Positions 14,879 to 41,924 of a stretch of DNA of 64,000 nt are shown in pieces. Both the position numbers and the translations under genes were made by a program. This stretch comes from Macrostomum lignano (Eukaryota): positions 124,001 to 188,000 of the forward strand of contig NIVC01000237.1 of assembly GCA_002269645.1 (NCBI GenBank). The letters run 5' to 3'. Position 1 is the stretch's first letter. The number at the start of each line of letters is the position of its first letter. Under the pieces are notes generated by a model that had not been told where the DNA came from, searched no databases, and saw only the letters and a list, made by a program, of their open reading frames with translations.

Positions 14879-15664
14879 GGCTCATTCCATATAAGATAGA
14901 CATATTTGGAAAATAGAAAAAAGTCAATATTTTTGCTTGCCATTGCCTAATTAGCCTATTTTTTTACCAAATGTTTATATTGTGCAATATATACAATCTA
15001 AGAATAAAGGAATGGTAAAATGTTGGATTAGTATGTTATCAATTGGCAAAAAGTCATTTTTGTAAAAATTTGGACATTTTTCGAAGCAAAAGACATCATT
15101 AAGATTTTGTACCTTTTAAAAACAAATAGAAAGCTTTTGAAGGTTGAAACAAACTATAGATAAAAGTATAGTACTTGTATCATCAGATAAAAGCATTGGT
15201 GACCAAATAATCTATTATATTTTTAATGTATTAGTACCTCAAAGTTACTGAATTGACAGAAAAAAATATGTTACGACCATAATGTTACGACCATAAGGCT
15301 GCCTTTTCTTTTGTATCTTTGTTGCCTTTTGAGTTTATATATTCTAATAAAAGAGTATGATTTCTAAAGATGTTCTTAGTCAAATTTTAAAAATGTATTG
15401 CAAAATATCAAAAATGAAAAATGTTATAAGACTTTTACCTTTTAGTTTCTATATGTCAAAAATCCTGTCGTTACGACCATAAGTGTCATTTAAGGTTTAA
15501 TATCATCTATACTAATGATGATATCTATATGAAACTCTATATATATATTCTAGACAAAATAATCTTTCATTTATAATATTGGTTTAGTATATTCTATTAT
15601 TAGATTTCATTTTATAAGTAAAAATAACCTGTCATGTTACGACCATGCTTATATGGAATGAGCC
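14879..15664. mobile_element. Non-autonomous DNA transposon (MITE), 786 bp, 17-bp perfect TIRs, 4-bp TSD TTCA
   Basis: GGCTCATTCCATATAAG at 14879-14895 and its reverse complement at 15648-15664; TTCA at 14875-14878 and 15665-15668. Four internal GTTACGACCAT motifs (15270, 15284, 15470, 15636). AT-rich, no ORF. Confidence 0.85.
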
Positions 15665-17711: not shown

Positions 17712-17987
17712 TATACTCAGCAACATTGAAAAGTCGCCATCACAAAAGATTCCATCTGTGGTCGCCACTTTTGAGAGTGTAGGTAAAGTCTCTTAATCTT
17801 TGCAAGTGACGCAACTTAGCTATGCCGCGGCAGACTTGAGTTTAGGAATGAAATGGGGGAGCAGTGTGTGAGGCTTGGACAGATTAAAGCTATCCCAATC
17901 AGTTTTCTTGCATCTTTTATTTCAGAATAGTCCAAGAGAAATTTCTCACTGGTGCATAGTGGTGACTTTTCAATGTTGCTAAGTATA
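17712..17987. mobile_element. MITE, ~276 bp, ~28-bp imperfect TIRs ending in TA (Tc1/mariner-type TSD)
   Basis: TATACTCAGCAACATTGAAAAGTCGCCA (17712-17739) versus the reverse complement of 17960-17987: 2 mismatches in 28 bp, with TA at both outer ends. Confidence 0.75.
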
Positions 17988-20900
17988 CATGCATCAAATA
18001 TATTACATATATCAAACAAACAAATGAAATTTTAAAACGTAAGCAGAAAATTTAAGTTAGGTAAAGTTAGGTCCCAGACAAAGTGCAGCAGTCCTTTGGC
18101 AAGCGGCGCTTATAGGAGATTCCTATCTTCATCCAACTCAGAAACTCCATCTTCATCCAAGTTTCTGATGTCATCGTCAGATGCGGAAGCACTCTTGAAT
18201 AGTATTTGTTTGCCTAGAGCAGAAATTTGCATAAAGTGTTATGTATATATATAAACTTATACAAATCGTATATTGTTTGGCTCTGTAATAATATTTTTTT
18301 AGAATTGATAAAGTATTTGTAGCTAGTTAATATTGTTCATTTAAATTTAAGAGGAAAGAAGAGAGGAGTAAAGTGAATAGGAAAAGAAGGATTAGATTAA
18401 TTTTAGAGTTCAAGATATTTTGGGTTTCCCAGGTTTTCATTTATTTCCTGATTTTCCAGGTTTTTAGGTCATGGTTAAAATGAACAATGTGCTAGATAAT
18501 TTACTGTAGATGGCCATTAGGTTTTAAAAAAGAATGACAAGCTTATTGGTAGTAAGCTCCACACCATACGTGAGAAGATTTGACAGACACTGCCTTATGA
18601 TGGAAAGAGTGTGATGTGTTTTCGAATCAGGCGCTCAATTCCTATTGCTCTGAAGATGCGCAAGGTTGCAATTGACATCCCCATTGACAAATCAATGTCT
18701 ATTTGAGACCATTGCAGCGCACGGGCAAAAAAAGTAAAAAGCACGCCAAACTTCTTTGCGCACCAAATCTCTTTCCTCGATAATCTGCAAGTAAAACTGT
18801 AGAAGCTTAACACCTTGCCACTGCTATGCATGATCTCTGTTGCAACCTTCTATATCTGGTGTGCAAATCATTGCCAGATCAATCACAGCAGATGGAGCAC
18901 ACTTCTCATTATGCCTCTTTATAAGGGCTTCACCTTCCTCCGATTTGTGCTTTCTCTTCCTCCAATTTGTATAGCAATTTTTTCTGCCAAGATAACTCTG
19001 TACTCTGTTGCTCCCAATCTTGACAGGTTGCCAAGAATGTTGGGATGTCACCTAGCAATAGACAGCAAGGAATGGAAATAAAGGCTTTATGCAAATAAAA
19101 GCAGAAAAAACAGCAAGCATCAATGTTAAAATGCTTGAAGGGCCACAAACAATATTAATTACAGTTGTCAATAAACTTATAGTCCATTTTGTAAGTCAGG
19201 AAAAATTGATGGACTTTCAAATAAAACTGCTGAAGGCTTTGCTTCTCGACCTTGTCTCTTTGAAGCAACCAATAACCTGTAGTGTACAGTGTATACTAGC
19301 TGTTTTTAGTAATAAATCAATTAGAATTCAATGATGCATGCAGCTACTAATAAAGCTTACTACTGTTACTGAGCAAACTACTCAACAAGGCTACTTATAG
19401 CAAACCCAATGAACCTACTTATTGATGTTGTTGATTACATGAAAGTTGATAGAAGTCGCCCAATTATTGAGAAATTCATGCCAGTTGATATGCATCATTT
19501 CTTTCAGCTGCAAGCCAAAATGGCAGAATAGTGACCAAATGTGCTTGCAGCTTTTTCTACCAGTGAGACTAGCACCTGCTTTATATCTTATCCCTTACTT
19601 TGTCTGGCAAGCCTCTTTGTGGCCATACACATGAAAAGCTGGGATCACAAAATCTACTCTCAAGTTGCTGAAATGACTGGCTAGCTTACAACTGATATTG
19701 TAAGAGACAATCAATTTTTGGTCAGGCAGATTGTTTGCTAGAGCCTTTGTCACCATGGCTTTTGAGTAAGCTAGTCTGAAATGAAATTATAAAGCTGCAT
19801 TATGCATAGGCTAAATGTTTAAACATGACCGCACATTTTTGGAACATATATAAATTTTCCAATACCTTTCACCAGGAGTGACCATATCAGTGAGATAGAC
19901 TATAGAAAAGTGCCTACACGAGCCACAAAATAGGCCAAATATATCCAGTCTTTTTTGTTGGATGCCATTGTGAGTGCCTGGCTCTTGGCTCCTGAATCTT
20001 AGCTGGTTGCAAAGTCAACATCGACAAAAAAACAGATGCACTTGCATCTGGGGGAGAGTTCGCCTTTCTAGCCAGTTTTGGGTGTTTAAAACCAAAATAT
20101 CCATCCAGCATAAGGAATTTAGGAACATCTGGTCATTCACTGCTCACGGTCACATTGCTAACTGGCCTAGCATTGATGTCGTCAACTTCATTGACTTGTT
20201 CAACATCAGTATAAGGTACCTTTGAAAAATCAGACAGGAGCAAAAAGTAAAAATGATATTAGTAAAGAATAATTATAGAAAATATATAAGCAGTGCTAAC
20301 ATTGAAGCACGCTGGACAGGATGATTGTTGGCCCCATCGGACATCTTGCAAAAGTCATCAAAAGGCTCGAAAGCTTCCTGACGTGTTCAGGGTGCAAAAC
20401 ATATCAATCTGAAGTTAATATAGCAAATTTTATATATGCTCCCTTACTTTTTACTTTGAATTTGAACCCAGTGAGGATACATGCTTTTGCTTCGCTCAAT
20501 AATATGAGCACATATATGTACTTATTCATAGGTTGCTGCAAGTTGTGTGCACATAGTATACCAAATAAGTGAATATATAAAACACAAATTATTACTCGCA
20601 TAGGAGAGCCGAGCCACAAAGAACTTTTGATGTGCCTCCATGCATTGCATAATGATGATAGCAAGGCAATGCAATGAGACGAAATACAGTCAAGGGCAAG
20701 CAGCAAATTGAAGTTCACTGCTATGTCAGAGATATAGCCTCGATTAGCTTCTGCAATAAGCTCAAGGTGTTTTGAGGCTGCTCCGAGTCTGAGATTTTTA
20801 GCTTGGATTTTGGCTTGTATTTATTTAAATTTTGCAAGAATCAGGCTATTTTTAGTAAGTGACAATTTTGCATTTTGGAAATTTGACCTCTCAAAAATTA

Positions 20901-22174
20901 GATAGAATACAATAGATTTGAGCATTGAGTACCATATTTGGGATTCTAAATTTAGATGTTGCAAAAGATGATCACTTGTTGTTTTCGTGGTCTTTTAAAA
21001 ATAAAGTATGACAGCTCGGCATTTTAGGTTTGCATTTTCACATTTTTAAATTGCTAAGCAAGTGCTGAAGTGGAAGGCTATTGAACAGGAAGTTAGGAAT
21101 AGCCAGTGCCTGTCTCAGAGTGTCCTTCAAAAATGTTTAGAAATCAATGATCATGAAGTCTTGATGCTCATTTTTGTCCAAGGACATTTGCTGTTTGCTT
21201 TTTAGTTTGTGCAGGCCAAACTTTTATGAGTGATAAAGTACTGCCACAACAAGGATTGAACCTTGGTGCTGGAAAAAGAAGCAAAAACCATAAAAATATA
21301 GGTTTTCTATATACATATACATATATATAGTTAGCATGTTATTTAAACTAGTAAACAATGGGGCAATTTTTTTGTAAGGTGCAAAAAATGGCCCTTTGCC
21401 AATCACATGACATCACTGTTAGCAGAAAAGTTATATATTAAAGTAAACAATTGTATCTTCTTTTTGGGCTAAAAAAAAATTAAAAAAGTTTTTTTGTAAA
21501 AAGACAGCATTTACTAACTTTTGCTTGGAGCTCTATAAATAGATACTTGGAACTATATTTTTATTAAAACAGATGCATATACATATAACAGAACTCTTAG
21601 AAAGTGTAATAAAAAACTGTAACTATAATCAGTGTTGATATAGCTTATACTTTTAATATAATTTTGTCATTGATAAAAGACCATATTTATGAAGTTAGAT
21701 ATCTTAGCCTATAAGAACAGCTTGTGTCAAGTAAAAATTAGATCTTGATCTATAAAACTAGATCCCAATCAACCTCAAATTTTTAACTATCTGGGCTGCT
21801 AAGCCAATTTTGTTATAAATATCATTCATTTCAACAAATACTATTAATTCAAATTGTAATTTCTGATGTTTTATTATTATTTTTAATTTGCTTTGTACGC
21901 TTTGTTTTATATGCTATACAATAGTTATTATCCGATTTGTGATCAAATTCCTAGTTAGCGCATGTGAATGCTTATTTAAAGTTTAGAAAGTTATATAAAT
22001 TGAATATACTTTAAGTAATACATTGCACTACTAACTCTGGATCTATAACATATAGATCTATCAATCTATAACAAGCCAAATAGTATGAATAATATACTAA
22101 TAATAAACTCCAATTATTTAACTAAATCAGTCTCACTGTCAGAATCAAACCAGCATATTTGTGAATTGCATTGC

Positions 22175-25100
22175 ATGGATCCCAATAACAAGATGCAGAC
22201 GCCTGGATTTTTTCTGGACCTAACCGCGTCCACGTCAACAGTTCGCGAGGCTAACAGCGGTATGACATCATCGCAACCTCCGGCTTCAGGCTCCTCTGCA
22301 GCCAAGTCTCGGCAATCTCAATCCTCAACTTCAACATCGACATCATCAAGCAGCGATGACGAGTCAGACGATTGCGTAATCACCGGCGTCTCCTCTGATG
22401 GCGCGGCTGGCCCATCCCAGGCTGTGCAGCGAGCGCGCCGTTTCTTAGAATCGGCGCCAGTTGCCAACAGCGCCGCTGCAAACACCGCGCCGGCGCCGGC
22501 GCCACCTCCGTTGCTTCAACCTTCGCCGCCAAAGCCGAAGTGCTCTACTTTGTCAACTCAAACTGAACCAGAGTATGTGGTTCTGCTGACTGACAGTCAT
22601 AGCGACTACTTGCCGAATTCCCCGGTGCCGCCGGCTCCGCTGTCTCGATGCTCGCAGTCGCCGGCGCCTCAAATGGTGGACCAGCTGGCTATGGATTGCG
22701 TCCGTCAGCTGACTGACAGCGGGCGCTACCCTGAAAGCCGCCTAGTGCTGGAGCTGATGTCGCAGAGGCTGGGCCCCGGCCGCCTGTGGCAGTGGGGCAT
22801 CAACAACACAGACCGGGTGCCGCTTCTGCGCAGGCTGGATAGGGCCGGCGCTCAGGCCGCTCTGCACGTGCAGGTTGATCCATAGGGTATCCATAGCACT
22901 CTCCCATAGCAACCAGCCTATCTGAGGATGCGGAATATTGTTTATTAGGACACAGTTGCCCATAGCAACCAGCTGAGGTGTTTGTTGTTTACTAGGGCAT
23001 AGTTGACCATAGCAACCAGGTGATGTGTGTTGCTGTTTATTAGGACACAGTTGCCCATAGCAACCAGCTGATGTGTTTGTTGTTTATTAGACACCTTAGC
23101 AAATCAGCTGAGGTGTTTGTTGCTTATTAGGATACAGTTGCCCATAGCAACCAGCTGAGGTGTTGGTTGTTTATTAGGATACAGTTTCCCATAGCGACCA
23201 GGTAATGTGTCTGTTGTTTATTCGGATACAGTTTCCCATAGCAACCAGGTAATGTGTCTGTTGTTTATTCGGATACAGTTTCCCATAGCGACCAGGTAAT
23301 GTGTCTGTTGTTTATTCGGATACAGTTTCCCATAGCAACCAGGTAATGTGTCTGTTGTTTATTAGGATACAGTTTCCCATAGCAACCATGTAATGTGTCT
23401 GTTGTTTATTAGGATACAGTTTCCCATAGCAACCATGCAATGTGTCTGTTGTTTATTAGGATACAGTTTCCCATAGCGACCAGGTAATGTGTCTGTTGTT
23501 TATTCGGATACAGTTTCCCATAACAACCAGCTAAGAATGAGTTTGTCTTTAACTAAGATACCGTCGTTCATAGCAAGTAAATTTATAGTTACTCGTAAAC
23601 ATGTTTTTTGAAATATGGTATTCCATTATATACGAGTATCGTACAACTATGCTATGCAGTTTGATAGTGGTTTGTGCAATGCAATCCAGCTAAGCTGTTC
23701 GCCCCACGATTCTCAGGCCCTTATCCGCCAGCGCAACCTCATCACTCTGGCCGAGGTGGCCGCCTCCCTTAGCGGTTCGCGCGGCCTCACCAAAGACGTG
23801 GCTCTGCTGGGCAGCCCGCTGCGCTTTCCTTTTGTTAGGGAATATTTCTGGCCAGATCCCAGTGTGACTGCCGTGCCGCAGGTGCGTTTGTATTTGCTTG
23901 CAATTGTGCTTTTGCTCAGCTTTGCTTGTGTTGCATTTTTCTAAATCTTATATAGGTCCTTCCAAATCCTAATGTACGAGATTTTGGCTGCCAGCCTCCC
24001 AGATCCTTAGTTGCTGGGCCAGCCTTCCAGATCCTCAGTTGCTGGGCCAGCCTTCCAGATCCTCAGTTGCTGGGCCAGCCTTCCAGATCCTCAGTTGCTG
24101 GGCCAGACTCCCAGATCCTCAGCTGCTGGGCCAGCCTTCCAGATCCTCAGTTGCTGGGCCAGCCTCCCAGATCCCCAGTTGCTGGGCCAGCCTCCCAGAT
24201 CCCCAGTTGCTGGGCCAGCCTCCCAGAGTGTCAGTTGCTGTGCCAGCCCAGATCAGTTCATATATTAACTTCCCACCGCTCCGATCCGAGCAGATCAGCT
24301 CCCTAGACGTGCTTAACTATCTGGAGGTGTTCAGCTCCAGTCGGTGTCGCCGTGTCGAAGCCACCGACTGCGATGAATTTTTGGAGTACCTGTGCACTCA
24401 GCGCTGCGTGGCGTCTCCGCAGCACCTGTGCGTTCGGATTGCGAATTTCGGCGCTCTGCTCGGAGCGCTGTTTGGTACGAAAAAAACGGCGCAGAACTCG
24501 CCAGTGGTGTCCAGGTAAGACTGCTTTTACTGTAACGAAATTATTTAACACATGTAGGTTATTGTAAATAGAGGGGCAGATTCTATTTGCGGTGGGGCAG
24601 ACTATCAACAGAGGGGCGAATTCTATCAGCAGAGGGGCGAATTCTATCAGCAGAGGGGCGGATTCCATCAGCAGAGGGGCGGATTCCATCAGTAGAGGGG
24701 CGGATTCTATTAACGGAGGGGCGGATTTTAGCAATGGAAGGGCAGCAGATTCTAGCAGCAGAGGGGCGGATTCTATCAACAGAGGGGCGGATTCTATCAA
24801 CGGAGGGGCGGATTTTAGCAATGGAAGGGCAGCAGATTCTAGCAGCAGAGGGGCGGATTCTATCAACGGAGGGGCGGATTCTATCAGCAGAGGGGCGCAT
24901 TTCATCAGCAGAGGGGCGGATTCCATCAGCAGAGGGGCGGATTTCATCAGCAGAGGGGCGGATTCCATCAGCAGAGAGGCGGATTCCATCAGCAGAGGGG
25001 CGGATTCCATTAGCGGAGAGGCGGATTCCATCAGCAGAGGGGCGGATTCCATCAGCAGAGGGCGGATTCTATCAGCAGAGGGGCGGATTCTATTAGCGGA

Positions 25101-28100
25101 GAGGCGGATTTCATCAGCAGAGGGGCGGATTTCATCAGCAGAGGGCGGATTCTATCAGCAGAGGGGCGGATTCTATTAGCGGAGAGGCGGATTTCATCAG
25201 CAGAGGGGCGGATTCCATCAGCAGAGGGGCGGATTCCATCAGCAGAGGGGCGGATTTCATCAGCAGAGGGGCGGATTCTATTAGCGGAGAGGCGGATTTC
25301 ATCAGCAGAGGGGCGGATTCCATCAGCAGAGGGGCGGATTCTATCAACATAGATGGAGACCGGGTTGGACAGCAGGGCCAAATTCTTCCAGTAGAGACAG
25401 GTTACATTATGCACATGCACCAACGGAATAGTGGATTTCAACAGGCAGTCACGCAGAGTTGAATGTTGAAACTCCCGCATCTGCGCAACTCGCAGACACT
25501 TGGAAGCCGTTCGCCAGACAACCATCAACCGTATCCGATCCGCTTTCGAAACTTTGCTGTCCTCCTCGTTGCGGCGTCGCGGCTCCACCTGGAAGCTGCG
25601 CCGGCCCCTGTCCCGGATGCAGCCGCTGCAGTGCCTGCGCGAAGTGGCCGCCAACTACGCCTGCCTGGTCGACACCCTTCGCGAGGCCACCGACGGCCTC
25701 ACCGGTTTGGCTATGCAGGCCTCCGTCGCCGCATTCTTGCGCGCAGTTGAGTCCGAGGGACCGCTGGCCGCTCAGCTGCTGCACTTGGCCCTGTGCGCCA
25801 CGGCCGATAGCGACTCTAGGAAGCTGCGACGCGAAGCCGAAGCTCTGCGCAGGCGGATGTTCGGTTTGGACGATAGAGGATCGGCTGCTGCGGCTGGTCA
25901 GAATAATCAGAAGCATCCAGCCACTGCCGCACGATGCTCCAAGTGTCAGGGAGATCTGAGTAAGTCACTTGTGAACAGTGGCTCGGACTTTTAATATGAT
26001 GGCTGTTGATTGGTGTAATGGCTGTCAGATTGGTGTAATGGCTGTCAGATTGCTGTGATGGCTGTCAGATTGGTGTGATGGCTGTCAGATTGGTGTGGTG
26101 GCTGTCAGATTGGTGTGATGGCTGTCAGATTGGTGTGGTGGCTGTCAGATTGGTGTGGTGGCTGTCAGATTGGTGTGACGGCTGTCAGATTGGTGTGGTG
26201 GCTGTCAGATTGGTGTGATAGCTGTCAGATTGGTGTGATGGCTGTCAGATTGGTGTGGTGGCTGTCAGATTGGTGTGATAGCTGTCAGATTGGTGTGGTG
26301 GCTGTCAGATTGGTGTGATAGCTGTCAGATTGGTGTGATAGCTGTCAGATTGGTGTGGTGGCTGTCAGATTGGTGTGATAGCTGTCAGATTGGTGTGATA
26401 GCTGTCAGATTGGTGTGGTGGCTGTCAGATTGGTGTGACGGCTGTCAGATTGGTGTGGTGGCTGTCAGATTGGTGTGATAGCTGTCAGATTGGTGTGATG
26501 GCTGTCAGATTGGTGTGGTGGCTGTCAGATTGGTGTGATAGCTGTCAGATTGGTGTGATAGCTGTCAGATTGGTGTGGTGGCTGTCAGATTGGTGTGACG
26601 GCTGTCAGATTGGTGTGGTGGCTGTCAGATTGGTGTGATAGCTGTCAGATTGGTGTGATGGCTGTCAGATTGGTGTGGTGGCTGTCAGATTGGTGTGATA
26701 GCTGTCAGATTGGTGTGATAGCTGTCAGATTGGTGTGATAGCTGTCAGATTGGTGTGATAGCTGTCAGATTGGTGTGGTGGCTGTCAGATTGGTGTGATA
26801 GCTGTCAGATTGGTGTGATGGCTGTCAGATTGGTGTGGTGGCTGTCAGATTGGTGTGATAGCTGTCAGATTGGTGTGGTGGCTGTCAGATTGGTGTGACG
26901 GCTGTCAGATTGGTGTGGTGGCTGTCAGATTGGTGTGATAGCTGTCAGATTGGTGTGATGGCTGTCAGATTGGTGTGGTGGCTGTCAGATTGGTGTGGTG
27001 GCTGTCAGATTGGTGTGGTGGCTGTCAGATTGGTGTGATGGCTGTCAGATTGGTGTGATAGCTGTCAGATTGGTGTGATGGCTGTCAGATTGGTGTGGTG
27101 GCTGTCAGATTGGTGTGATAGCTGTCAGATTGGTGTGGTGGCTGTCAGATTGGTGTGATAGCTGTCAGATTGGTGTAAGCTGTCAGATTGGTGTAAGCTG
27201 TCAGATTGGTGTGATGGCTGTCAGATTGGTGCGATGGCTGTCAGATTGGTGTAAACTGTTAGATTGGTGTGATGGCTGTCAGATTGCTGTAAGCTGTCAG
27301 ATTGCTGTAAGCTGTCATTGCTGTAAGCTGTCAGATTGCTGTAAGCTGTCAGATTGGTGTGATGGCTGTCAGATTGCTGTAAGCCGTCAGATGCTGTAAC
27401 CTGTCAGATGGCTGTAAGCTGTGCAACAAATCAATCCCAACTATCGCAGACAAATCCAGCTCAGTTGTCATCATAGATGACGATAGCAGCAGCGATGACA
27501 GCAGCGACAATGGGGACATCGCTGACAGTCGCAAAGCGTCAATATCAGTCAGCGCTGAACAGAGCCATCAGAAGCGACTGCAAGCGACTGCTGAAGCTGC
27601 CAGATTTCTGTTGAATCGACTCGATAGTGCCAAGATCCAATCCAGTTCTGATCAGCGGCCTTTGCCTACAAATTCACTGACTGCCACTCTTGAAGAGCTA
27701 CAATCCGAGCTGCTTGAACGGTGCTGCCCAGACAGTGCTGAGGCTGCCGCTGCGCTGCTGCTAAACAGCCTGATTGCTGATGCGAGATTGGCCGCGGTGA
27801 GCTTTCCCCCTCTATCTTCCCCCCATTGCCTACTAACAAGTAGTAGGAGTAGCATATGACACGAATTTCTTTATTGTACATCTGTAACATGGGGTCAAAT
27901 TAATAAATTTACAGAATGCCACTCTATGGTATATAAAAGTACTGTCTCTCTTTCCATTCCCAGGCGCTGGACGCCACGTTCGTTCATTCGGCGTCTTTGA
28001 CAGCGAGGCCGGGTGGTGGCTCCGCTTTGATGCAACAACAGCCGCATTGCGCAGCAGTCATTGACGAAGCTGCCATGCTGCCCTCCAGTCTGCTGGCTAA

Positions 28101-31002
28101 AGCTAAGACTGCCGGCGATGTGTCGGCTGCTGAGGAGGCCCTGGCTGCTCTGGCTGACCTGCCACTGCTGACCGATGCCGAACGGAAGCTGGCCTGGGAT
28201 TTGCGATTCCGTCCTCGTCTGGGCTGCCTGGCCGAGTTTCTCAACGCCAATGCGGCTGCTGGTAGGTAGCTTTGCAGGCGTAGGGCGAGTGGTGTCCTGG
28301 AATCCCCGATCCCATGTCCTTGGATCCCTGATCCTAACCCACTGTGTCCTTGGATCCCTGATCCCAACACTGTGTGTCCTGGGATCCCTGATCCTAACCC
28401 ACTGTGTGTCCTAGGATCCATGATCCCAACCCAGTGTGTCCTGGGATCCCTGATCCCAATCCAGCGTGTCCTCGGATCCCTGATCCCAACACAGTGTGTC
28501 CTTGGATCCCTGATCCCAACCCACTGTGTGTCCTTGGATCCCTGATCCTAACCCACTGTGTGTCCTTGGATCCCTGATCCCAACCCACTGTGTGTCCTTG
28601 GATCCCTGATCCCAACACAGTGTGTCCTGGGATCCCTGATCCCAATCCAGCGTGTCCTCGGATCCCTGATCCCAATCCAGCGTGTCCTTGGTTCCCTTAT
28701 CCCAACCCACTGTGTCCTCGGATCCCTGACACCCCAACCCACTGTGTCCTTCGATCCCTGATCCCAACCCAGTATGTCCTTGAATCCCTGCAGATGCCAA
28801 AAAAGTTTGTAATTGACCTCCTGTTCTGGACTAAGTTTATTCTCACTCCCCAACCGTCCCGACCTGCACAGCCGCGGACCGCCACTCGCTGCTGTTTCTG
28901 CGCTCCGGCTCCGGCTGCCTTCGCCGTCTTGCCGCCGACGCCAATTTGGAGGCCTACCGCTGCGCCGTCTCGTCCGGCGACGCCCGCGCCGCTGCCGGAC
29001 TTTTAGCCTCACTGTGGGCCGTCCGACGTGCCGCCGCTGCCGCTGCCGTCGGGTCTGCCACCCCGATCGTCGGCGACGGAGACAACACCGACGTCGAGGC
29101 CGACGCCGACGATTTCCCTCGTGCCGCCGTTCGCCAGCTGGCCGTCGACGCCGCCGCCTCGGCCGGCTGGTCCCGACAGGCGCGCGTGGAGTTTGCCAGC
29201 CAGCTGGCCCGGCGCCTGCCTGCCTCCGCTGCCGCCGGCATTGGCTTCGACGCCTGCGTTGCCGGCTTCTTGACGGCTGGCGCAGACGATGCTGACGATC
29301 GCGGCGGCTTTGCTGCTTCGCTGCCAGACGACGCGCGTTGCCGATTGGCCGCCTGCTGGCCGCACCTTCGACTATCGCCGCCGCCGCCGCCGTTGTCGTC
29401 GTCAACATCGGCCACTAGTTCAGCCCTCGACGTCAAACCTACGTCGAAACAGAAGAACTTGTCGAAGTCCAAGCCAGCCGTTGATGTTTCCGCCTCCGCC
29501 GCTGTCCTCGCCACCGTAGACAACGATGAAGACTCCGTAGACTTGGACTCGGCTTCCTGTCGGGCCGTTATTGTCGATGGTATTCGACGCGGCGCCTTTG
29601 GCATCGACGTTGACTACGATGACGAGTCGGGCGGCGATGGAGACGCTGTCCCGGAGGCGTTGCGCGAGCATCACGAGCGTCTCGGTCGCAGTCTGGAACG
29701 GCTGTCGCGCGATCTGTACTCCGGCGAGGCTCACTTCCTGCTGGAGCTGCTGCAGAATGCCGATGATAACGCCTACCCGGAGGGAGCCACGCCTGCTGTT
29801 TGCTTTCAACTGTCGACTGGTAAGCTTTGGGGTGGGGTTAATTTCAGACGGGAGATTTTTGTCAGGTGTTTGAGTCTATTTGAAGATTACTGTCAAGAGT
29901 GTCAGGGGTTTGGGTCAGTATTCGAATATTACTGTCAGGGGATTACTGTCAGAGTGTCAGGGGTTTGAGTCAGTATTCGAATATTACTGTCAGGTGTTCG
30001 AGTCAGTATTCGAATATTACTGTCAGGGGTTCGAGTCAGTATTCGAATATTACTGTCAGGGGTTCGAGTCAGTATTCGAAGATTACTGTCAGGGGATTAC
30101 TGTCAGAGTGTCAGGGGTTTGAGTCAGTATTCGAATATTACTGTCAGGGGATTACTGTCAGAGTGTCAGGGGTTTGAGTCAGTATTCGAATATTACTGTC
30201 AGGGGTTTGAGTCAGTATTCGAATATTACTGTCAGGGGATTACTGTCAGAGTGTCAGGGGTTTGAGTCAGTATTCGAATATTACTGTCAGGGGTTTGAGT
30301 CAGTATTCGAATATTACTGTCAGGGGATTACTGTCAGAGTGTCAGGGGTTTGAGTCAGTATTCGGATATTACTGTCAGGGGTTTGAGTCAGTATTCGAAT
30401 ATTACTGTCAGGGGTTTGAGTCAGTATTCGAATATTACTGTCAGGGGTTCGAGTCAGTATTCGAATATTACTGTCAGGGGTTCGAGTCAGTAGTACCAAA
30501 ACGCACCAAACCAACACCCTCAGATGGATCCCAGCTCTCCGTCAGCTGCAACGAGCGCGGCTTCACTCCGCGCGCCGTTCGCGCCATTTGCGACGTCGGT
30601 CGGAGCACCAAATCGGCGCACGCCGCCGGCCGCATCGGGCACAAGGGCATCGGCTTCAAGGCCGTGTTCCGCGTGTCCGATGCGCCGGAAATTCATTCGG
30701 GAAATTTTCACTTCCGGTTCGATTTGACCAAAGCTGGGCCGTTGGGCTGCGTGCTGCCGCACTGGATACCCGGCCTGCGGACAGCCTGCGGTTTGTGTGG
30801 CTTTTGCTGACTGCTTTTGTTGTCCTTGTTGCTAATGAGATTGGCATTGTACTCGTAGCTTCAGAATTTTATGGCAAATAGACGGATAGGCAGACAGATA
30901 GACAGACAAACAGACAGACAGATAGACAGACAAGCAGGCAGGCAGGCAGACAGACAGGCAGACAGACAGACAGACAGACAGACAGACACGCAGACAGACA
31001 GT

Positions 31003-31047
<45 letters not shown>

Positions 31048-34000
31048 GACAGACAGACAGACAGACAGACAGTATAATGTTAGAAAGCGATAACTTTTTG
31101 CTATAAAAGAGGCACCAAATTGCATCTGCAGGCACGGAAATTCGAATTCCACTTCGCAATCCGGTCGGGCCGAATTCGCCGCTACTGGAGGAGCTCCGCC
31201 CGGAGCTTCTGCTGTTTCTCAACCGCCTGCGCCGCCTGCGCATCGTCTGCGCCGGCGACAATGAGGCCGACCTGCGCTGCACTGAGACGTCGCTCGTCTG
31301 CCTGGACGAGTCCGGCCACCAGACGGCGGACGACGTGGCTGTCCGATTGGAAACTCGAACTGGCGGCAGCAATGGCCGCCTGGTGTCCACCAGCGACTAC
31401 CTGCTGGTGTCGCAGTCTGTTGACGTTGGCGACGGTCGGGAGTCCAAGCTGACCGCGGCGATACCGCTTGACGATGTCGGCGAAGTCGACGGCGACATGG
31501 ACGGCGAAGAAGCTGACGGCGCGGTTGAAGAGGCCGAGTACCCGGTTTACGCCTACCTGCCTCTGAGGAGCTTCGGTTTCCGGTTTTTACTGCAGGTGGG
31601 TTGCCTATTATTATTATCAGATATTGCCTACTAATAAGTAGCAAGAAAAGAATATTTAGCGAAACTCTTATTTGCGTTCACCAAACGGTTACGTTAGTGA
31701 AGTACAAGTTTAGAACTTGAAGTAAGGCTCTCACTGTCTGCATCACAATGACTCGGGATGCCCGTCAACCCTTAGGGCGACTTCGAGATCCCCTCCTCGC
31801 GCGAGGACATTCGCCGAGATTCTGCATGGAACGAGCGACTCCGCGATCGCCTGCCGTCGCTGCTGCTGGCCGTGCATTCGGCGCTGAGTCGCCGATGCGG
31901 ACCTCTGATTGCCGCTTCTCGCTGCTTTGAACTGCTGCCGCTTGAGACTGAGCTGCAGGTAATGAATTGGCCGCTTATCTGAGTCACAGAGTCACCGAAT
32001 CGACCGCTCATTTGAGTCACTGAGTCACTGAATTAGTCGCTCATTTGAGTCACTGAATTAGTCGCTCATTTGAGTCACTGAATTGGCCGCTCATTTGAGT
32101 CACTGAATTGGCCGCTCATTTGAGTCACTGAATTGGCCGCTCATTTGAGTCACTGAATTGGCCGCTCATTTGAGTCACTGAATTGGTTGCTCATTTGAGT
32201 CACTGAATTGGCCGCTCATTTGAGTCACTGAATCACTGAATTGGCCGCTTATTTGAGTCACTGAATTGGCCGCTCATTTGAGTCACTGAATTGGCCGCTT
32301 ATTTGAGTCACTGAATTGGCCGCTCATTTGAGTCACTGAATTGGCCGCTCATTTGAGTCACTGAATTGGCCGCTTATTTGAGTCACCCTGCAATTTCAGG
32401 GCTTCTTCCGTCCATCCGGCCGGGCCATTCTGGCCGCCTTCCGACGCCTCGCCTGGCTGCCAGTGCTCAGCGGCGATGGGACCGGCGAATCTTTTCAGCG
32501 GGAGGGTCTTCAATTGCAGCCGCCTGGCAGCGTCCTGGCCGCTACCGACGATGTCGGTGACGACTGCGGCGAAGGCGTTGGAGGCGTCAGCTGTGGGCTG
32601 CTCGACACGCTCGGCCTGAGTCGGCCGGACGAGATTCGTCAGCTGCTGGGTGCCTGGCCGGCGCATCCGGAGCTGCTGCTGCGCCGAAAGCGCCAAACTA
32701 GGCACGGTCGGATAAGTCTGGCGCGCTGGCGCCAGCTGCAACAGGCGCTAGGTATGCCGGCGCCCTTGGCCGCATCCAGTGAGGCCGCCTCGGCCATGCT
32801 GAGGCGCCTGGTTGGCGCCGGCGATAAAAGCGACACCGGCGCTGCTGACTGGCGCGCCGCAGCCGCACTGCTCGATGCCGTCTGCTCGCAGGTTTGTGTC
32901 AGGCATCGCTCTCTGATCCCGTTCGAAACTGGCCCACTGATGTTGATAGAGACTTACCTCTTCTGGCCCAATAGTGAATCGTCCTGTCAGCCTCATGGAG
33001 ATGAACCAGAATCGCTCTCTGATTTCCTGTCAGAATCGCCCACCATAACTTCCTGTCAGAATCGCCCTCTGACTTCCTGTCAGAATCGCATCGCCCACTG
33101 ACTTCCTGTCAGAATTGCCCACTGACTTCCTGTCAGAATCGCCCTCTGACTTCCTGTCAGAATCGCCCACTGACTTCCTGTCAGAATCGCATCGCCCACT
33201 GACTTCCTGTCAGTATCGCATCGCCCACTGACTTCCTGTCAGAATCGCCCACTGACTTCCTTTCAGAATCGCCCACTGACTTCCTGTCAGAATCGCCCAC
33301 TAACTTTCTGTCAGAATCGCCCACTGACTTCCTGTCAGAATCGCCCACTGACTTCCTGTCAGAATCGCCCACTGACTTCCTGTCAGAATCGCCCACTAAC
33401 TTCCTGTCAGAATCGCCCACTGACTTCCTGTCAGAATCGCCCACTAACTTCCTGTCAGAATCGCCCACTGACTTCCTGTCAGAATCGCCCACTGACTTCC
33501 TGTCAGAATCGCCCACTGACTTCCTGTCAGAATCGCCCACTGACTTCCTGTCAGAATCGCCCTCTGACTTGCAGAGATAATCACCCTCTAAATGCTTATA
33601 AAAATCGCCCTTTGACTTTCACTCCCTCAGCCGTCGCTGTTTCGCCGAGCCCGCGCCAGCCTCCAGTCTCTGGCCTTCATCCCCGCTCTTCGCGGTCCTC
33701 ATCCGACCCGAGACCGGCTCACCGTCTGCCTGCGCGACAGCCTGCTGATCATGCCGCCGCCTCCGACATCGGCGGCAACATCAAAAGAAACAACCGACGC
33801 CGCCGTTTACGATTGGCCGAGCTGCTGTCGCTTATTGAACGAACTATTTCCCTGTCTGACTAAGCTGTGCATCCTGGATACGAAAGCCCTGAGTTCGATT
33901 CCCGGCGGCGATCAGGGATCTCTAGTTGCTAATCGATTGATGAAGCGATTTGAGCAGCTGGGCGCCCGCTATCCGGATCGCGACCTGCTGTTTGTTGAAT

Positions 34001-37000
34001 GCCTGCTGCCGGCGCTTCGAGCTGAAGCCGCCGCTCTGCCGTCGCTGGCTTGCCGAGCTTTGGGCGGCGCCGTGACACCTGCGGTTAAGGCGCGGCTCGT
34101 CCTGCTGGCCGACGCTGCCCGGCGACTCCGCCCAGCTGCGCCGCACCGAGTCGCCGAACTGGCCGACATTGTCCCCCTGCTGTTGGCCGACGGTCGAGCG
34201 GTCCTGCCGTTTCAGCACGCCGATGTTCACCTGCCAGAGCTGCTGGACACCTCCGGTTTTGCATTCGATCGGCTGAAATGGCAACGCAACGGCCGGCCCT
34301 GGAAGGTCGTGTCGGCGAGCCACTTTAGCGGCGCTGACAACGCACTGATCATCGACTGGCGCCGGTTCCTTGTTGATGACCTGGGCGTCCTTGACGGCCC
34401 CATGGAGTCGCCACCGGGTGACTTTCCCGAACTGGCCGACATTCTTGAAGAAGCTGACGCCGCCGTCAGCTCCGCTTGGGCGCTGATGTCGACTGGAAAT
34501 CCAGACGAAACTGTCGACGATGCCACTCTGCTGTCGCTGTTCGGCCACCTGTCGCAGGCTTGGCGGCGTCGCTACAGTCGACACCTGCCTGACGGTCGCT
34601 TCGGTCGCGCTGTCCGCTCTGTTGCCTGGCTGCCCACCGCCTGCCTTCTCCAGCCGTGTCTTGCGCGACTGCCGACACGCCTGGCGCCTGGCGCCGTTCA
34701 CCTGCCAGGCCCGGCCGTCGATTCGCTCGGCGCCGCTGACTTCCTGCCCGTGCTGAAGCCCGACACCGTGGCCGGAGCCGATCCGGACTTTCTGGCCGAC
34801 ATTGGAGTCCGCGCCGGCGGCCCGACACCTGCTGAAGTGGCCGACGCTCTGGTGGACTGGTCGGAGGCTGTCGGTGCGAATGGCCTGGTTCGAAGCTCAC
34901 TCAGCAGGATGACAGAGGTGTACAGGTTCTGCTGGCGCGGCTGGGATCAGCTGACGGAGCTTCAGCGATCACGACTGTCTGGGGGTCGCATTGTCTTCCT
35001 GCCCGACATCATCTCGCTGCATGATTCCGACAGCAGCTCCGGTCGAAGTTGTAGCCTAGTTGTCGACGGTCGATTCGTCGCTGGCTCCGGCGCAATCTGG
35101 TGCGGCGGCACCGACGGAGATGCCAACATAGAGATGTCGGCTGCTGCCGACTGGCCGTCGCCGATGCCGAGGCCGCTGCTGGAGGAGCTGCGCAGCCTGG
35201 CCAGCCTGCACTACCCGGCCGACCTGGCCGAATTTTTCATGAACTGCTGCGGTGTCCAGCGCCGGCCCTGCCTGGCCTGGTGCGAGCTTCGCCTGCGGCG
35301 CGCCTGTCGACTTAGTGGCGCCGAGGATTCCAGCAGCATCGACTCGGCGCTGGCCAGCCTGACCTCAATGCTCGCCGACATCGTTGTCGACGGCGCCGAC
35401 GACAACAAGGACAAGCGGCGCCAAGCAGCGGACATCCTCGACCGGCTGCGCCAGCTGGCCTGCCTGCCGCGGCTGTCCGGCGGCCGTTGCAGACCCTGCG
35501 ACCGGCCAGCCATCGTTTTAGACGAAGAAGACTTCGCTGACAGCGCTGCTCCTGCCGACGAACTCGATGATGACTTCCTTCGCCAGTTGGTCGACGCCGG
35601 TGCCCAGCTGGTCGACCTGCGGCGCCGTCGGTTTCCCTGTCGTAACTTGCGCCATCAGCTGCGCCATCTGTGCCAGTCGGAGTCGCTGCTCAACTTGCCA
35701 ACTCTTCAAGCCTGCCTGCGCTCCAGCCTGTTCCCCGATGATGCCGAGCAGAGGGACTCACCGATTCTTGAACGTCAGGCTGCTGACCTGCTCGACGGTG
35801 TACAGCGCTGGCTGTACTGCGTCTGGCCGGAGCGCTACGCTGCCGCTGTCGGGGCCGGCCTGCCGCAGCTGCTGGCCGCCACCCGGGTCGCCGCCGCGCC
35901 CTGTCTGGCCACCCGGCGCTACCTGGCTCAGAACCCCTTCGCCGCCGTGTCCACCCGTCGGCCGCACATGCTGCTGCCAACATCGCCATTGGAGTGTCGC
36001 CACCTCCTACTGGTGGACGCCGCAGACGCCAACGGCGACTCTTACGCGGCCGCCCGGCGCAGATGCGAGGCGCTGGTCTCGGCGTTGTTGCAGCTGGCCG
36101 GGCCGCTGCTGGCGCCTGTCAGCGAAGATCTGCGCGCATTGGCGCTCGACCTGAGCCTCTGCCGGCGCCCCGCTGGCGCTGTTGGGCCGGACGATGAGTC
36201 TGACCGACACCGCCGGCTCGAGGAACGCTTGCTGGCCCACGGCGGCGCCGTCTGGCATCCGGTCGGCTTTGAGAATTCCGGCGCAAGGTGGACAATTTTT
36301 CAGCGTCACCGACATCCTGCCGGTGGTTCGGCAAAGATGAGCCACCTGCCGGAGCCGCCGATGTCCGTTCAGCAGCAGCGGCAGCAGCTCAACGCGAGCG
36401 CCGATGATCAACCCGTTGCTAAGCGACCTCGAATGTCGATTCCACCGTCATCTTCGGTAGCGGCACCTGCGGGGACACCTTCAGCTGCACCTTCAGCGGC
36501 AACTTCAGCTGCACCTTCAGCGGCACCTTCAGCGGCTTCAGCTGCACCTTCAGCTGCACCTTCAGCTGCACCTTCAGCGGCAACTTCAGCTGCACCTTCA
36601 GCGGCACCTTCAGCGGCTTCAGCTGCACCTTCAGCTGCACCTTCAGCGGCAACTTCAGCTGCACCTTTAGCGGCACCTTCAGCGGCACCTTTAGCGGCAG
36701 CTTCGTCTGCAGCTGCCTCCAACGGTGCACGAACAAACGCTCTGCCTTTGTTTTTCCTGCGGCAGCAGCAGCAGCCGCCAGCTCTGACTGCCACCCTGGC
36801 TGAGCTGCCTGCTCCAACGCCTGAGCAGGTGCAGCGTCTGCTAGATTCGAACTCGCGACCTGCTGACAGTTCCGTAGACGAACTTGCCGGCCGAATCGGC
36901 GAACGCCTGGCCGCTGATTGGCTGCGCGGCCTGGCCAGCTTCGAGTCGCAGCCGGTTGCCGAGGTGGCCTGGCTGAACGAGTCAGCCGAGACCGGCCAGC

Positions 37001-37287
37001 CCTTCGACATAGAGCTGCGGCTTGGCGACGGCCGCTTGCTGCAGCTGGAGGTGAAGTCCAGCGCCGGCGAGGCGGCCGGATTCTATCTGAGCCTCGCCGA
37101 GCTGCGCCAGGCCCTGGCCGAGCCGGACAGCCACCGCCTGCTGCGGGTGCTCGGCCTGGCCAGCGGCCGGCCCCGCCTCGTGCTGGTGCCCGACCTGGTG
37201 GACCGCCTGCGACGCGGCCGCTACCGACTGCTGGTGCTGCCGTCTGCTGCCGACTGCGATGAAGCCGCATCTGCGACTGCTGACTGA
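22175..37287 (+). CDS. NOV: NO VEIN (NOV)-like protein, 12 exons, ~2,748 aa: N-terminal NOV region, sacsin-type GHKL (HATPase_c) ATPase, C-terminal DUF3883/NOV_C
   Basis: Exons: 22175-22873, 23717-23881, 24294-24514, 25496-25959, 27408(or 27450)-27796, 27964-28261, 28872-29819, 30524-30790, 31132-31595, 31776-31958, 32400-32891, 33631-37287. All introns are GT-AG, phases match, and the total of 8,247 nt is an open frame. Motifs: [16 protein letters not shown]; [22 protein letters not shown]; NERGF...DVGRSTK...[12 protein letters not shown]; [28 protein letters not shown]; GRIGE...[16 protein letters not shown]...LEVKSS...LSLAEL. Confidence 0.88.
22900..23530. repeat. Intron 1 minisatellite, ~47-bp unit (CCCATAGCAACCAGGTAATGTGTCTGTTGTTTATTAGGATACAGTTT)
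   Basis: About 13 tandem copies are visible. Confidence 0.9.
23985..24250. repeat. Intron 2 minisatellite, 28-bp unit (CAGATCCTCAGTTGCTGGGCCAGCCTTC)
   Basis: About 9 tandem copies. Confidence 0.9.
24590..25345. repeat. Intron 3 minisatellite, 21-bp unit (ATCAGCAGAGGGGCGGATTCT)
   Basis: About 35 copies. The unit is a multiple of 3, so it yields long spurious ORFs. Confidence 0.93.
25995..27407. repeat. Intron 4 minisatellite, 20-bp unit (GGCTGTCAGATTGGTGTGAT)
   Basis: About 70 copies with variants GAT/GGT/GAC/ATA; degenerate at both ends. Confidence 0.95.
28295..28790. repeat. Intron 6 minisatellite, ~31-34-bp unit (GGATCCCTGATCCCAACCCACTGTGTGTCCTT)
   Basis: About 15 copies. Confidence 0.92.
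29865..30490. repeat. Intron 7 minisatellite, 30-bp unit (GAGTCAGTATTCGAATATTACTGTCAGGGGTT-like) with 21-bp insert variants
   Basis: About 15 copies with interspersed GGATTACTGTCAGAGTGTCAG blocks. Confidence 0.92.
30876..31072. repeat. Intron 8 (GACA)n microsatellite
   Basis: Direct observation. Confidence 0.95.
31965..32385. repeat. Intron 10 minisatellite, 25-bp unit (GAGTCACTGAATTGGCCGCTCATTT)
   Basis: About 16 copies. Confidence 0.93.
33010..33570. repeat. Intron 11 minisatellite, 24-bp unit (CTTCCTGTCAGAATCGCCCACTGA)
   Basis: About 22 copies. Confidence 0.93.
36470..36715 (+). repeat. Coding 12-bp repeat (GCACCTTCAGCG/T) encoding a (SAAP)n linker
   Basis: In frame within exon 12: [18 protein letters not shown]... 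Confidence 0.9.
36880..37240 (+). other. DUF3883 / NOV_C domain (PD-(D/E)XK-like nuclease fold)
   Basis: G-x-x-G-E, V-x-W-x-N-E...G-x-P-F-D-I, L-E-V-K-S and F-x-L-S-x-x-E motifs in the correct order and spacing. Confidence 0.85.
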
Positions 37288-39337: not shown

Positions 39338-40647
39338 ATGCTCCGCGCCTCTTCTGTGTTTGTTGTTCTGTTAGCTCTCGTGAGCACCGCCCAGAGCTGC
39401 TATCATGGTGAGTGAGTCGTTTGGTCAGAGGTTCTGTGTTTAGCGCAACTCATCTGATATCCATATCATATCGAGGGATTTCGAGCTAATTAGCGAGCTT
39501 CGTTTCTTTGTGCTAGAGGTCCGGGTTCGAATTAAAGTATGGATATTGGGTTAACTTAAGAGCCGAATTGGGTATCAATAAGCGCCAAATTCGGTATCAA
39601 AAAGTGCCAAATCAAGTACCAATAAGCACCTAATTGGATGTAAATAAACGCCATGGATTGAGTATCAAAAGGTGCCATGTTTAGATTATCAATAAGCGCC
39701 AAATTGAGCATCAAGAAGCGCCAAATTTGAGTATCAAAAAGCGCTAAATTGGGTATCAATAAGAGCGCCAAATTAGGTATCAATAAAAGCGCCAAATTAG
39801 GTATCAATAAAAGCGCCAAATTGGGTATCAATTAGCGCCAAATCGAGTATCAATAAAAGCACCAAATTGAGTAACAATAAAAGCGCCAAATCGGGTACCA
39901 ATGAGCGCCAAATTAGGTATCAATAAAAGCGCCAAATTGGGTATCAATTAGCGCCAAATCGAGTATCAATAAAAGCACCAAATTGAGTAACAATAAAAGC
40001 GCCAAATCGGGTACCAATGAGCGCCAAATTAGGTATCAATAAAAGCGCCGAATTGGATATCAATTAGCGCCAAATCGAGTATCAAAAAAGCGCCAAATGT
40101 GTGGGCATCATCAATAAGCGTAAAAAATCGGGTATCAATATAAGCGCCAATTTGGGTATTTGGCAAACCCGATGGCGAAGGTGCGCCAACGAGGCGTGAA
40201 AGGCGCTGATATCGCATAGAATTTCCACATGTATAATTTGTCATTTGAGCATCGGCCGTCCCACTTTAAACCCCAGTCGGAGCCATAGTCTCCGGCGTCA
40301 AGAAGAAGCTGGCATTCGACTGGGGTAGTGAACGCATTGTGCACAAAGGCTGCTACAAGCTTCGCGAACCGGAGCACTATAAATCAGAAAAAGGCACTGT
40401 AAGCTCCCTGACTCAGCTCTCCTGGGAGAAATGCCGCGACTCCTGCTATGGCAGCCCCGACAAAGCCAAGAAAGAAGAACTGATTGGCTTGCACAGCTCC
40501 GAGTGCTGGTGCTTTCATAAATTCAACAAGACCGATCACGTCTCGGACTCGGAGTGCAACCTCATCTGCCATGGCAGCAAGTTGCAGAGCTGCGGCGGCA
40601 AGTCACACATTTCGGTGTACGGCGCCACAAAAGTGGGCAACTCGTGA
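39338..40647 (+). CDS. Secreted single-WSC-domain protein 1 (146 aa, 2 exons)
   Basis: Exon 1 at 39338-39407 encodes the signal peptide MLRASSVFVVLLALVSTAQS-CYH. A phase-1 GT-AG intron follows. Exon 2 at 40277-40647 has the WSC pattern KGCY...C...C...ECWC...ECNLICHG...CGG with 8 Cys. Confidence 0.85.
39556..40160. repeat. AT-rich minisatellite (~22-24 bp, AATTGGGTATCAATAAAAGCGCCA) in the WSC1 intron
   Basis: About 25 variable copies. Confidence 0.88.
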
Positions 40648-41152: not shown

Positions 41153-41924
41153 ATGCAGACCGGCTGCCACATTGCTGCGGCTTCAGTGCTGCTGCTCCTA
41201 GCCACAATGGCCAGCTCGGCGGATGGCTGCTATCACGGTGAGTGTCAGGTCTTATATGAGATAGCAGTGACTGGAGCAGTATAATTAGGTGACAGGATGT
41301 GATATGAGTGACTAGAGCTGTACAGTTGGATGATAAGATGTGACAATGGCAGTGTCGAGGTGACAAGATAAGACCGGAGTGAGAAAAGCAGTGTCGGGGT
41401 GACAAGACGAGACAGAGGAGTGACAAGAGCAGTGTTGGGGTGACAAGACGAGACAGAGGAGTGACAAGAGCAGTGTCGGGTGACAGGACGAGACCGAGAA
41501 GTGACAAGAGCAGTGTCGGGATGACCCTCACCTGAACGCCGCAGTGGGCGCCATCGTCAGCGGAATCAAGAAGAAACTGACGTTCAGCAGCAATGAACGG
41601 CGCCAAGTGCACAAAGGCTGCTACAAGCTGCTCCAGCCGGACGAGTACAAATCTCAGATTGGGTCCGTGACTTCCATTGAGAAGAACAGCTGGGACAAGT
41701 GCCGCAAACATTGCTACGGTCCCAAACTCGCTGCCAAGCACAAGAACGATAAGATCGGACTGCAGGAGAAAAACTGCTGGTGCCACCATGTGTACCCGAT
41801 GTCCAGCAAGACCGTGGACTCGGACTGCACCTCAGCCTGTCCCGGCAACTCCAAGGAGACTTGCGGCAGCCCGAAACACATCTCGCTGTATTCAGCCGGA
41901 GCTGTCAAGGGCATGTCTGGTTGA
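41153..41924 (+). CDS. Secreted single-WSC-domain protein 2 (154 aa, 2 exons)
   Basis: Exon 1 at 41153-41237 (MQTGCHIAAASVLLLLATMASSADG-CYH); exon 2 at 41545-41924 (VGAIVSGIKKKL...KGCY...NCWC...DCTSACPG...CGS). Clear paralog of WSC1. AATAAA follows the stop codon. Confidence 0.85.
41330..41525. repeat. Minisatellite (GTGACAAGAGCAGTGTCGGG-like) in the WSC2 intron
   Basis: Recurrent GTGACAAGA core. Confidence 0.8.

Follow-up and report, generated by a model that had tools for sequence, protein, structure and literature searches.

What does an animal gene do that appears to join a GHKL-type ATPase to a domain of a nuclease superfamily, and is its product more plausibly a weapon against foreign nucleic acids or a component of the nucleus? 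This question is raised by a locus of the free-living flatworm Macrostomum lignano at positions 22175-37287 of a 64,000 nucleotide (nt) stretch of contig NIVC01000237.1 (positions 124,001 to 188,000 of the forward strand; hereafter "the window", to which all M. lignano coordinates refer). The analyses reported here show that the locus is one intact 12-exon animal gene and that it represents a member of the NO VEIN (NOV) family. Judging from sequence features and from analogy with characterized enzymes, we consider it likely (probability of roughly 60%) that the product is a NOV-family ATPase-nuclease, i.e., probably a nuclear ATP-regulated DNA nickase or nuclease. New here are a complete gene model, a corrected assignment of the ATPase type and a specific homology to TmtA, the protein of Tiamat, an anti-phage system reportedly described by Millman et al. 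in 2022.

An intact twelve-exon gene

The gene model was built from twelve open segments, with repeat-filled spacers between them, by joining GT donors to AG acceptors in matching phase. The resulting 12 exons, all on the forward strand, give a coding sequence (CDS) of 8,208 nt that encodes 2,735 amino acids (aa) with zero internal stop codons, and 11 of 11 introns are GT-AG and phase-compatible; a preliminary description of the locus, which had proposed 12 exons and ~2,750 aa at the same coordinates, came very close. The model was compared with three long homologues, i.e., a hypothetical protein of 2,748 aa from the acanthocephalan Pomphorhynchus laevis (P0162) and a protein of 2,722 aa (P0140), both with the same layout as the M. 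lignano protein, as well as a colinear NOV-like gene (L001, positions 7117-15706; Logan SRR30952579) that consists of six open reading frame (ORF) pieces with ~2,560 aa in all. A profile of these three was colinear with the model at aa 149-554 (E = 3e-19), aa 688-778 (E = 1e-4), aa 944-1381 (E = 2e-100) and aa 2515-2717 (E = 9e-13), as compared to E values of at least 0.6 for all of 200 shuffled decoys.

Exon 1 (22175-22873; aa 1-233) encodes a Ser/Pro-rich N-terminus and the onset of the conserved N-terminal region, and is based on an open frame, a GT donor, a colinear match to P0162 (aa 123-370, independent E = 3e-13) and the three-sequence profile. Its start codon is predicted; the ATG at 22175 was used, with an in-frame ATG at 22085 as an alternative. 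Exon 2 (23717-23881; aa 234-288), found by a splice-site scan and aligned with the homologues, is followed by exon 3 (24291-24514; aa 289-362) with the most conserved N-terminal block (SSLDVLNYL...EFLEYL...FGALLGAL). The exon 3 acceptor at 24291, still a prediction, is favored, and junction 2/3 aligns without gaps against P0162, P0140 and L001; another acceptor of intron 2, at 24252, was rejected as it would add residues without an aligned counterpart. Exon 4 (25496-25959; aa 363-517) has strong GTAAGA/GTAAGT sites and lies within the profile match at aa 149-554, and exon 5 (27450-27796; aa 518-633), with a predicted acceptor (intron 4), encodes an acidic/Ser tract that is found in the homologues too. 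Exon 6 (27964-28261; aa 634-732) carries the conserved motif LADLPLLTD...W...LG.L..FL and the profile match at aa 688-778, and exon 7 (28872-29819; aa 733-1048) terminates in GHKL motif I, ELLQNADD (29744-29767; E1024, N1028, D1031). With the exon 7 acceptor at 28872, the alignment over junction 6/7 is without gaps; two other acceptors of intron 6 were rejected, as that at 29007 would remove a conserved block and that at 28836 would add residues without an aligned counterpart.

The remaining exons encode the ATPase module and everything C-terminal of it. Motif II, NERGF (30550-30564), and the G-loop, GHKGIGFK (30637-30660), are located in exon 8 (30524-30790; aa 1049-1137), while exon 9 (31132-31595; aa 1138-1292) holds the GTEI motif and a beta-rich transducer (Hsp90 middle-like) and exon 10 (31776-31958; aa 1293-1353) holds a block matching the family consensus ADF....SR........WN. 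The ATPase module ends, and a divergent central region begins, in exon 11 (32400-32891; aa 1354-1517; donor CAG/GTTTGT). Exon 12 (33631-37287; aa 1518-2735 plus the stop codon) encodes the divergent central region, the PVAKRPR patch (36412-36432), an APSAA tract (36463-36723) and NOV_C. Antisense ORFs of up to 286 aa that occur within the gene were taken as GC-rich artefacts.

Public M. lignano proteins cover part of this model. UniProt A0A1I8GNW5 (P0184, 529 aa) is 100% identical to aa 927-1455, i.e., from within exon 7 to within exon 11, and because of this identity junctions 7/8, 8/9, 9/10 and 10/11 are exactly confirmed. Exon 9 and the junctions of exon 10 are also supported by A0A1I8GR25 (P0001); this protein (98.5% identical) and A0A1I8GR18 (P0185; 98.1% identical), which runs on into intron 8, stand for another, almost identical copy or allele. 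Exons 1 to 7 are supported by colinear sequence alignment with the long homologues. In the public annotation, the gene is present as fragments, one of which is misnamed 'Sister chromatid cohesion protein DCC1'; the complete 12-exon model mends this annotation, which splits the gene. The presence of introns, together with 98-100% identity to M. lignano proteins, bears out the earlier claim that the gene is of animal and not of bacterial origin.

One could argue that the locus is a decaying pseudogene, or a chance frame in GC-rich repeats joined by an over-optimistic exon model, as the gene is only fragmentary in public models, the central region is without a homologue in direct searches and the GC-rich DNA at the locus yields long spurious ORFs on both strands. 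On the other hand, the exon 12 reading frame shows 0 stops in 1,218 codons (the two alternative frames have 31 and 38), and the coding-type pattern of GC content at the three codon positions (GC1/GC2/GC3) is kept across the whole of this exon. Moreover, each of the 11 introns is GT-AG and in phase, conserved blocks in exons 1-3, 5, 6, 7-11 and 12 are colinear with the homologues, and the catalytic motifs are all intact. Decay or a chance frame is thus extremely improbable.

Domains and relatives of the protein

Pfam searches with the whole protein found SACS and NOV_C as the only domains. The single SACS match (PF25794; aa 1015-1112) scored 39.1 bits (gathering threshold 32.8; E = 1e-9), and the NCBIfam model P_loop_sacsin (sacsin N-terminal ATP-binding-like domain) also matched (E = 3e-19). 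The GHKL motifs start at aa 1024 (ELLQNADD), 1058 (NERGF), 1087 (GHKGIGFK) and 1138 (GTEI); E1024, N1028, D1031 and the G-loop (G1087-K1094) are invariant across the family (ATPase alignment A2). When the ATPase was used in a PDB profile search, sacsin SR1 (5V44-5V47) ranked first (E = 2e-19), followed by Hsp90, TRAP1 and HtpG. An AlphaFold2 model of aa 959-1378, built from a 39-sequence alignment, reached a predicted local distance difference test score (pLDDT) of 82 and a predicted template modeling score of 0.82; its top PDB matches by Foldseek were the N plus middle domains of the Hsp90 family (HtpG, TRAP1, Hsp90; E ~1e-10, ~400 columns).

We conclude that the ATPase (aa ~985-1380) is, as predicted by sequence and by structural modeling, a single Hsp90/sacsin-type GHKL module with a transducer domain. 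A MORC-type ATPase was rejected, as HATPase_c_3 was absent from the Pfam matches and PDB searches with the sequence and with the fold both led to sacsin and Hsp90 as the closest entries; MutL and MORC structures were absent among the top sequence and fold matches. The preliminary description had linked the protein to MORC-related prokaryotic GHKL systems, a link that is replaced here by one to Tiamat TmtA. A PDB profile search with the transducer segment yielded nothing significant, and the SSRED motif (R1301), in which the arginine presumably resembles that of the catalytic loop in the middle domain of Hsp90, was not linked to this loop by the sequence search.

The C-terminal domain is NOV_C, also known as DUF3883 (36901-37176; aa 2608-2699), recognized by Pfam (PF13020; 35.7-37 bits, gathering threshold 22.1; E = 4e-9 to 9e-9) and by the C-terminus of a TmtA profile. 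In a 23-sequence NOV_C alignment (A3), D2643, E2657 and K2659 are the sole invariant columns; a W, a P, the 'GE' pair and a downstream Glu are also conserved, and E2608 and E2674 are kept. These positions, i.e., E2608 (within GE, aa 2607-2608), D2643 (37006-37008; within PFD, aa 2641-2643), E2657 and K2659 (37048-37056; EVK, aa 2657-2659) and E2674, form the putative active site, and the PD-(D/E)XK signature (D ... E-x-K) is intact in the predicted M. lignano protein. According to Steczkiewicz et al. (PMC3424549), DUF3883 belongs to the PD-(D/E)XK superfamily, and in YenY4I, a restriction enzyme, it serves as the catalytic endonuclease domain (PMC6765204). In HmaA, NOV_C acts as a nickase on supercoiled DNA in the presence of Mn2+, and mutating the residues equivalent to the M. 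lignano NOV_C positions abolishes both this Mn2+-dependent nicking and phage defence (PMC11232893). The clan membership named in the preliminary description is accompanied by documented nuclease activity in bacteria and by conserved catalytic residues in the protein studied here; likewise, every GHKL and DUF3883 motif that it had listed as intact, as well as PVAKRPR (aa 2445-2451), is present in the translation.

Outside these two domains, the protein is harder to place. The N-terminal ~950 aa were seen here only in long NOV-like proteins, and the bacterial TmtA proteins used for comparison lack them; the conserved block within them (aa ~150-550) gave no Pfam match and no significant PDB profile match. 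The central region, i.e., the ~1,050 aa between the ATPase and the low-complexity tract, is fast-diverged. A word-indexed protein search with exon 12 gave no match, either with the whole exon or minus the APSAA tract, and an exhaustive HMMER search with exon 12 against 1.84 billion representatives gave 70 weak matches, each of which fell in NOV_C or in the low-complexity tract. The APSAA tract, located just N-terminal of NOV_C, is encoded by an in-frame tandem repeat at 36476-36704 (81 nt x2.8, 95% matches) and drew spurious database matches.

The ATPase region and NOV_C both have a specific bacterial counterpart. The PADLOC profile for TmtA (PDLC03972, 1302 positions) matched the region of aa 959-1381 (E = 2.7e-62; profile positions 22-345) and the M. 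lignano NOV_C (E = 2e-9; profile positions 1178-1285). As the P. laevis protein matched profile positions 6-911 (E = 8e-109), the homology to TmtA spans the central region for the family. A Hydrogenophaga protein (WP_382323637.1), which is an end-to-end TmtA (E = 3e-238), matched aa 968-1367 of the M. lignano protein with 209 bits, on par with other NOV-like proteins. Based on these matches, the predicted architecture from the ATPase on is that of bacterial TmtA, which on its own makes up the anti-phage system Tiamat. The M. lignano protein is a TmtA homologue and not a Tiamat system, being eukaryotic, encoded by a gene with introns and extended by ~950 aa at its N-terminus. A preprint gives Tiamat as a single-gene PD-(D/E)XK defence system of unknown mechanism (10.1101/2024.10.26.620412), and Tiamat is located in defence hotspots; within the literature searched we found no link between Tiamat and NOV or sacsin. 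Shorter GHKL plus NOV_C proteins also exist (~600 aa, Nocardia), and haloarchaeal and bacterial plasmids (H4, H6, H8, H9 and others) carry genes annotated as 'DUF3883 domain-containing' whose N-terminal part is 35-42% identical to the M. lignano ATPase domain over ~100-130 aa.

Among eukaryotes, the M. lignano protein shows the features of the NOV family, i.e., NOV_C above the gathering threshold, a single sacsin/Hsp90-type GHKL module in mid-protein and a colinear N-terminal region, and the NO VEIN architecture that had been proposed earlier (GHKL plus NOV_C/DUF3883) was confirmed. Further matches to the ATPase region came from Euglena, catfish, rotifer, fungi and a morning-glory 'NO VEIN-like' gene, and these sequence matches indicate that the NOV-like family is widespread in eukaryotes. 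NOV is still termed plant-specific (as cited in PMC12289216). The M. lignano gene, along with relatives of ~2,700 aa in the acanthocephalan and in other assemblies, shows that animals possess a full-length NOV family with intact catalytic residues. The L001 gene lies on a compact contig and has introns of ~100 nt, and its neighbors encode PDZ, ATP-synthase-delta, histone-fold and DEAD-helicase domains (animal-type, housekeeping genes by Pfam). The sole plant match, from Ipomoea (P0053), was rejected as a canonical NOV as it is a short SACS-only gene. A neighbor-joining tree of 140 aa of the ATPase did not resolve the family; eukaryotic and bacterial sequences were interleaved.

Probable function and genomic surroundings

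For a NOV-family ATPase-nuclease, we propose that the GHKL module would bind and hydrolyze ATP and would in this way be driven to dimerize or to change its conformation, as are Hsp90, MutL, GyrB and other GHKL enzymes, and that this change would license the C-terminal, metal-dependent NOV_C domain to nick or cut DNA, by analogy with HmaA. Its site of action is probably nuclear, as suggested by the KRPR patch and by the reported nuclear localization of plant NOV. According to citations in PMC12289216 and PMC11232893, plant NOV is a nuclear factor with a role in development, and the Arabidopsis gene is also cited as an embryo-defective locus, EMB2597. A conserved function in DNA or chromatin biology within the nucleus seems more probable to us than a role dedicated to defence, because the ~2,700-aa layout is kept in distant lineages, because the L001 homologue sits among housekeeping genes and because the phenotype of plant NOV is developmental.

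Several observations weigh against an ATP-regulated nuclease of the NOV and TmtA type. Motif II (NERGF) has a Glu, E1059, where Hsp90, MutL and MORC carry an Asp; this Glu is common to the whole family (consensus NNExGF in alignment A2). The AlphaFold model of NOV_C, which was built from a three-sequence alignment, has a pLDDT of 39, so that its compatible order of helices and strands is unreliable, and a PDB profile search with NOV_C found no sequence-related solved structure; the assignment of a nuclease fold thus rests on Pfam clan membership and on the literature. In addition, the central ~900 aa were without a homologue in the search of 1.84 billion representatives, and the central region did not match any PADLOC profile. 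By hhalign, aa 1492-2101 aligned in a colinear but weak manner (P = 0.002; Prob 13%), with P values of at least 0.46 for eight shuffles and the reversed sequence. End-to-end equivalence to TmtA is consequently shown, at the level of sequence, for relatives and not for the M. lignano protein itself. Finally, plant NOV was compared via the two Pfam domains alone, the wider colinearity being established with P0162, P0140 and L001.

It is tempting to hypothesize that the protein has kept a Tiamat-like immune role in the flatworm, i.e., that it is an ATP-gated nuclease which recognizes and cuts foreign or transposon nucleic acid. Through the homology of both ends to anti-phage TmtA, this idea has a better pedigree than before; NOV_C is also the effector of HmaA phage defence (PMC11232893), GHKL plus DUF3883 genes are carried by plasmids of archaea and bacteria and are located in defence hotspots of Pseudomonas (PMC12629846), and very fast divergence, as seen in the central region, is often a trait of conflict genes. 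Such divergence may, on the other hand, stem from compositional drift in GC and Ala/Arg content (64% GC in the CDS). The window holds a single locus, to which one ~98% identical copy or allele can be added, distantly related animals have proteins of ~2,700 aa with this layout, and both the housekeeping neighborhood of the L001 homologue and the developmental, embryo-defective character of plant NOV (as cited) run counter to a defence role, to which the LTR elements flanking the M. lignano gene add no information. Overall, we consider an immune role rather unlikely, and the action on foreign or transposon nucleic acid that was suggested earlier was not supported.

A different possibility is that the protein works as a sacsin-like chaperone or scaffold, with the Hsp90-type module acting on proteins and NOV_C serving as a nucleic-acid-binding or structural element instead of an active nuclease. 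Among solved structures, sacsin SR1 and the Hsp90 chaperones are indeed those most closely related to the ATPase, sacsin too ends in a nuclease-fold domain, HEPN, that is reportedly RNA-binding according to a preprint (10.64898/2025.12.18.694329), and PD-(D/E)XK folds often take non-catalytic roles (PMC3424549). Yet NOV_C retains every catalytic residue (D, E-x-K and the flanking Glu), all of them invariant in the family, Pfam searches found no DnaJ, UBL, HEPN or repeated sacsin repeating region (SRR) modules, and the bacterial homologues serve as nucleases in defence and not as chaperones; taken together, these points make a chaperone or scaffold distinctly improbable. We hold an extension of the immune hypothesis to be improbable as well, i.e., that the NOV proteins of eukaryotes as a whole, from plants and euglenids to several animal phyla, might represent a domesticated TmtA that gained ~950 N-terminal aa and would, in animals, still be an ATP-gated nuclease against invading or mobile DNA. 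If true, Tiamat would join the short list of bacterial defence systems kept in animal immunity, and the domesticated-TmtA reading would offer a first handle on the Tiamat mechanism. As M. lignano is a regeneration and stem-cell model with RNA interference, the function of the animal gene is open to testing, whether as the nuclear ATPase-nuclease favored here or otherwise.

The surroundings of the gene had been described as dense in transposable elements and as containing lectin-like genes, and a domain scan found long terminal repeat (LTR) elements and WSC-domain ORFs nearby, the latter being the lectin-like genes of that description. LTR sequences comprise a gypsy-type coding region (protease-reverse transcriptase-RNaseH-integrase; 5896-9358, minus strand), a fragment with a truncated RNaseH-integrase (10344-11684, plus strand), a BEL/Pao element (43605-49138, plus strand) and another gypsy-type coding region (56652-60209, plus strand). 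ORFs with the WSC (carbohydrate-binding) domain were found on the plus strand at 40270-40644 and 41505-41921 and on the minus strand at 42809-43174 and 53300-53689; the two minus-strand ORFs share an identical ~100-aa C-terminal part and flank the BEL/Pao element on opposite sides. An ORF of the LicD family (phosphotransferase, fukutin-like; 61497-61964, plus strand; Pfam E = 3.5e-14) probably runs into 62176-62724. The neighboring LTR and WSC genes are uninformative on the function of the NOV-like gene.

The composition of the locus itself is uneven. An AT-rich block (12000-22000; 31-37% GC) lies directly upstream of the gene, in which the CDS has 64% GC (69% at third codon positions) and the introns have 39-55% GC. 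Large minisatellite or microsatellite arrays are present in 9 of the 11 introns (22938-33570), e.g., 47 bp x13 at 22938-23534, 21 bp x35 at 24604-25346, 20 bp x70 at 25997-27380 and (AGAC)48 at 30880-31072; the exceptions are two short introns of 167 and 180 nt.

Comparison with known systems

Plant NOV, which is ~2,700 aa in length and, to our knowledge, known from one plant genetic study, is close in size to the M. lignano protein (2,735 aa). Arabidopsis NOV and the M. lignano protein share one sacsin-type GHKL module ~1,000 aa from the N-terminus, NOV_C at the C-terminal end and an NLS-like (nuclear localization signal) patch; they differ in that the gene described here is from a flatworm and in that its central ~1,050 aa have diverged past direct recognition.

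With sacsin and Hsp90, the protein shares the Bergerat-fold motifs (E-x-x-x-N and G-loop) and the transducer domain. Unlike sacsin, it has one module instead of three SRRs, shows no UBL, XPCB, DnaJ or HEPN domains by Pfam, and has a PD-(D/E)XK domain at the C-terminus where sacsin has HEPN. MutL and MORC resemble it in their general logic, i.e., a GHKL ATPase coupled to a DNA-cleaving module, whereas the M. lignano protein is without an S5 or CW domain, a coiled coil or the MutL C-terminal endonuclease domain. HmaA and YenY4I are other NOV_C/DUF3883 nucleases; their partner modules are a Snf2 helicase (HmaA) and PUA/DUF3427 (YenY4I), as compared to the GHKL ATPase in M. lignano, and the M. lignano NOV_C gave no match to the HmaA profile at a cut-off of E = 0.01.

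TmtA is alike in carrying, in this order, an N-terminal sacsin/Hsp90-type GHKL module with transducer, a long middle region and a C-terminal NOV_C domain. TmtA proteins, however, are shorter (1,060-1,780 aa), prokaryotic and intronless and begin at the ATPase, whereas the M. lignano protein adds ~950 aa N-terminally as well as an Ala/Pro/Ser tract, and its central region was not matched by the TmtA profile. As TmtA is validated in phage defence but is of unknown mechanism, work on NOV and work on Tiamat could inform each other with regard to the input sensed by the ATPase and the substrate cut by the nuclease.

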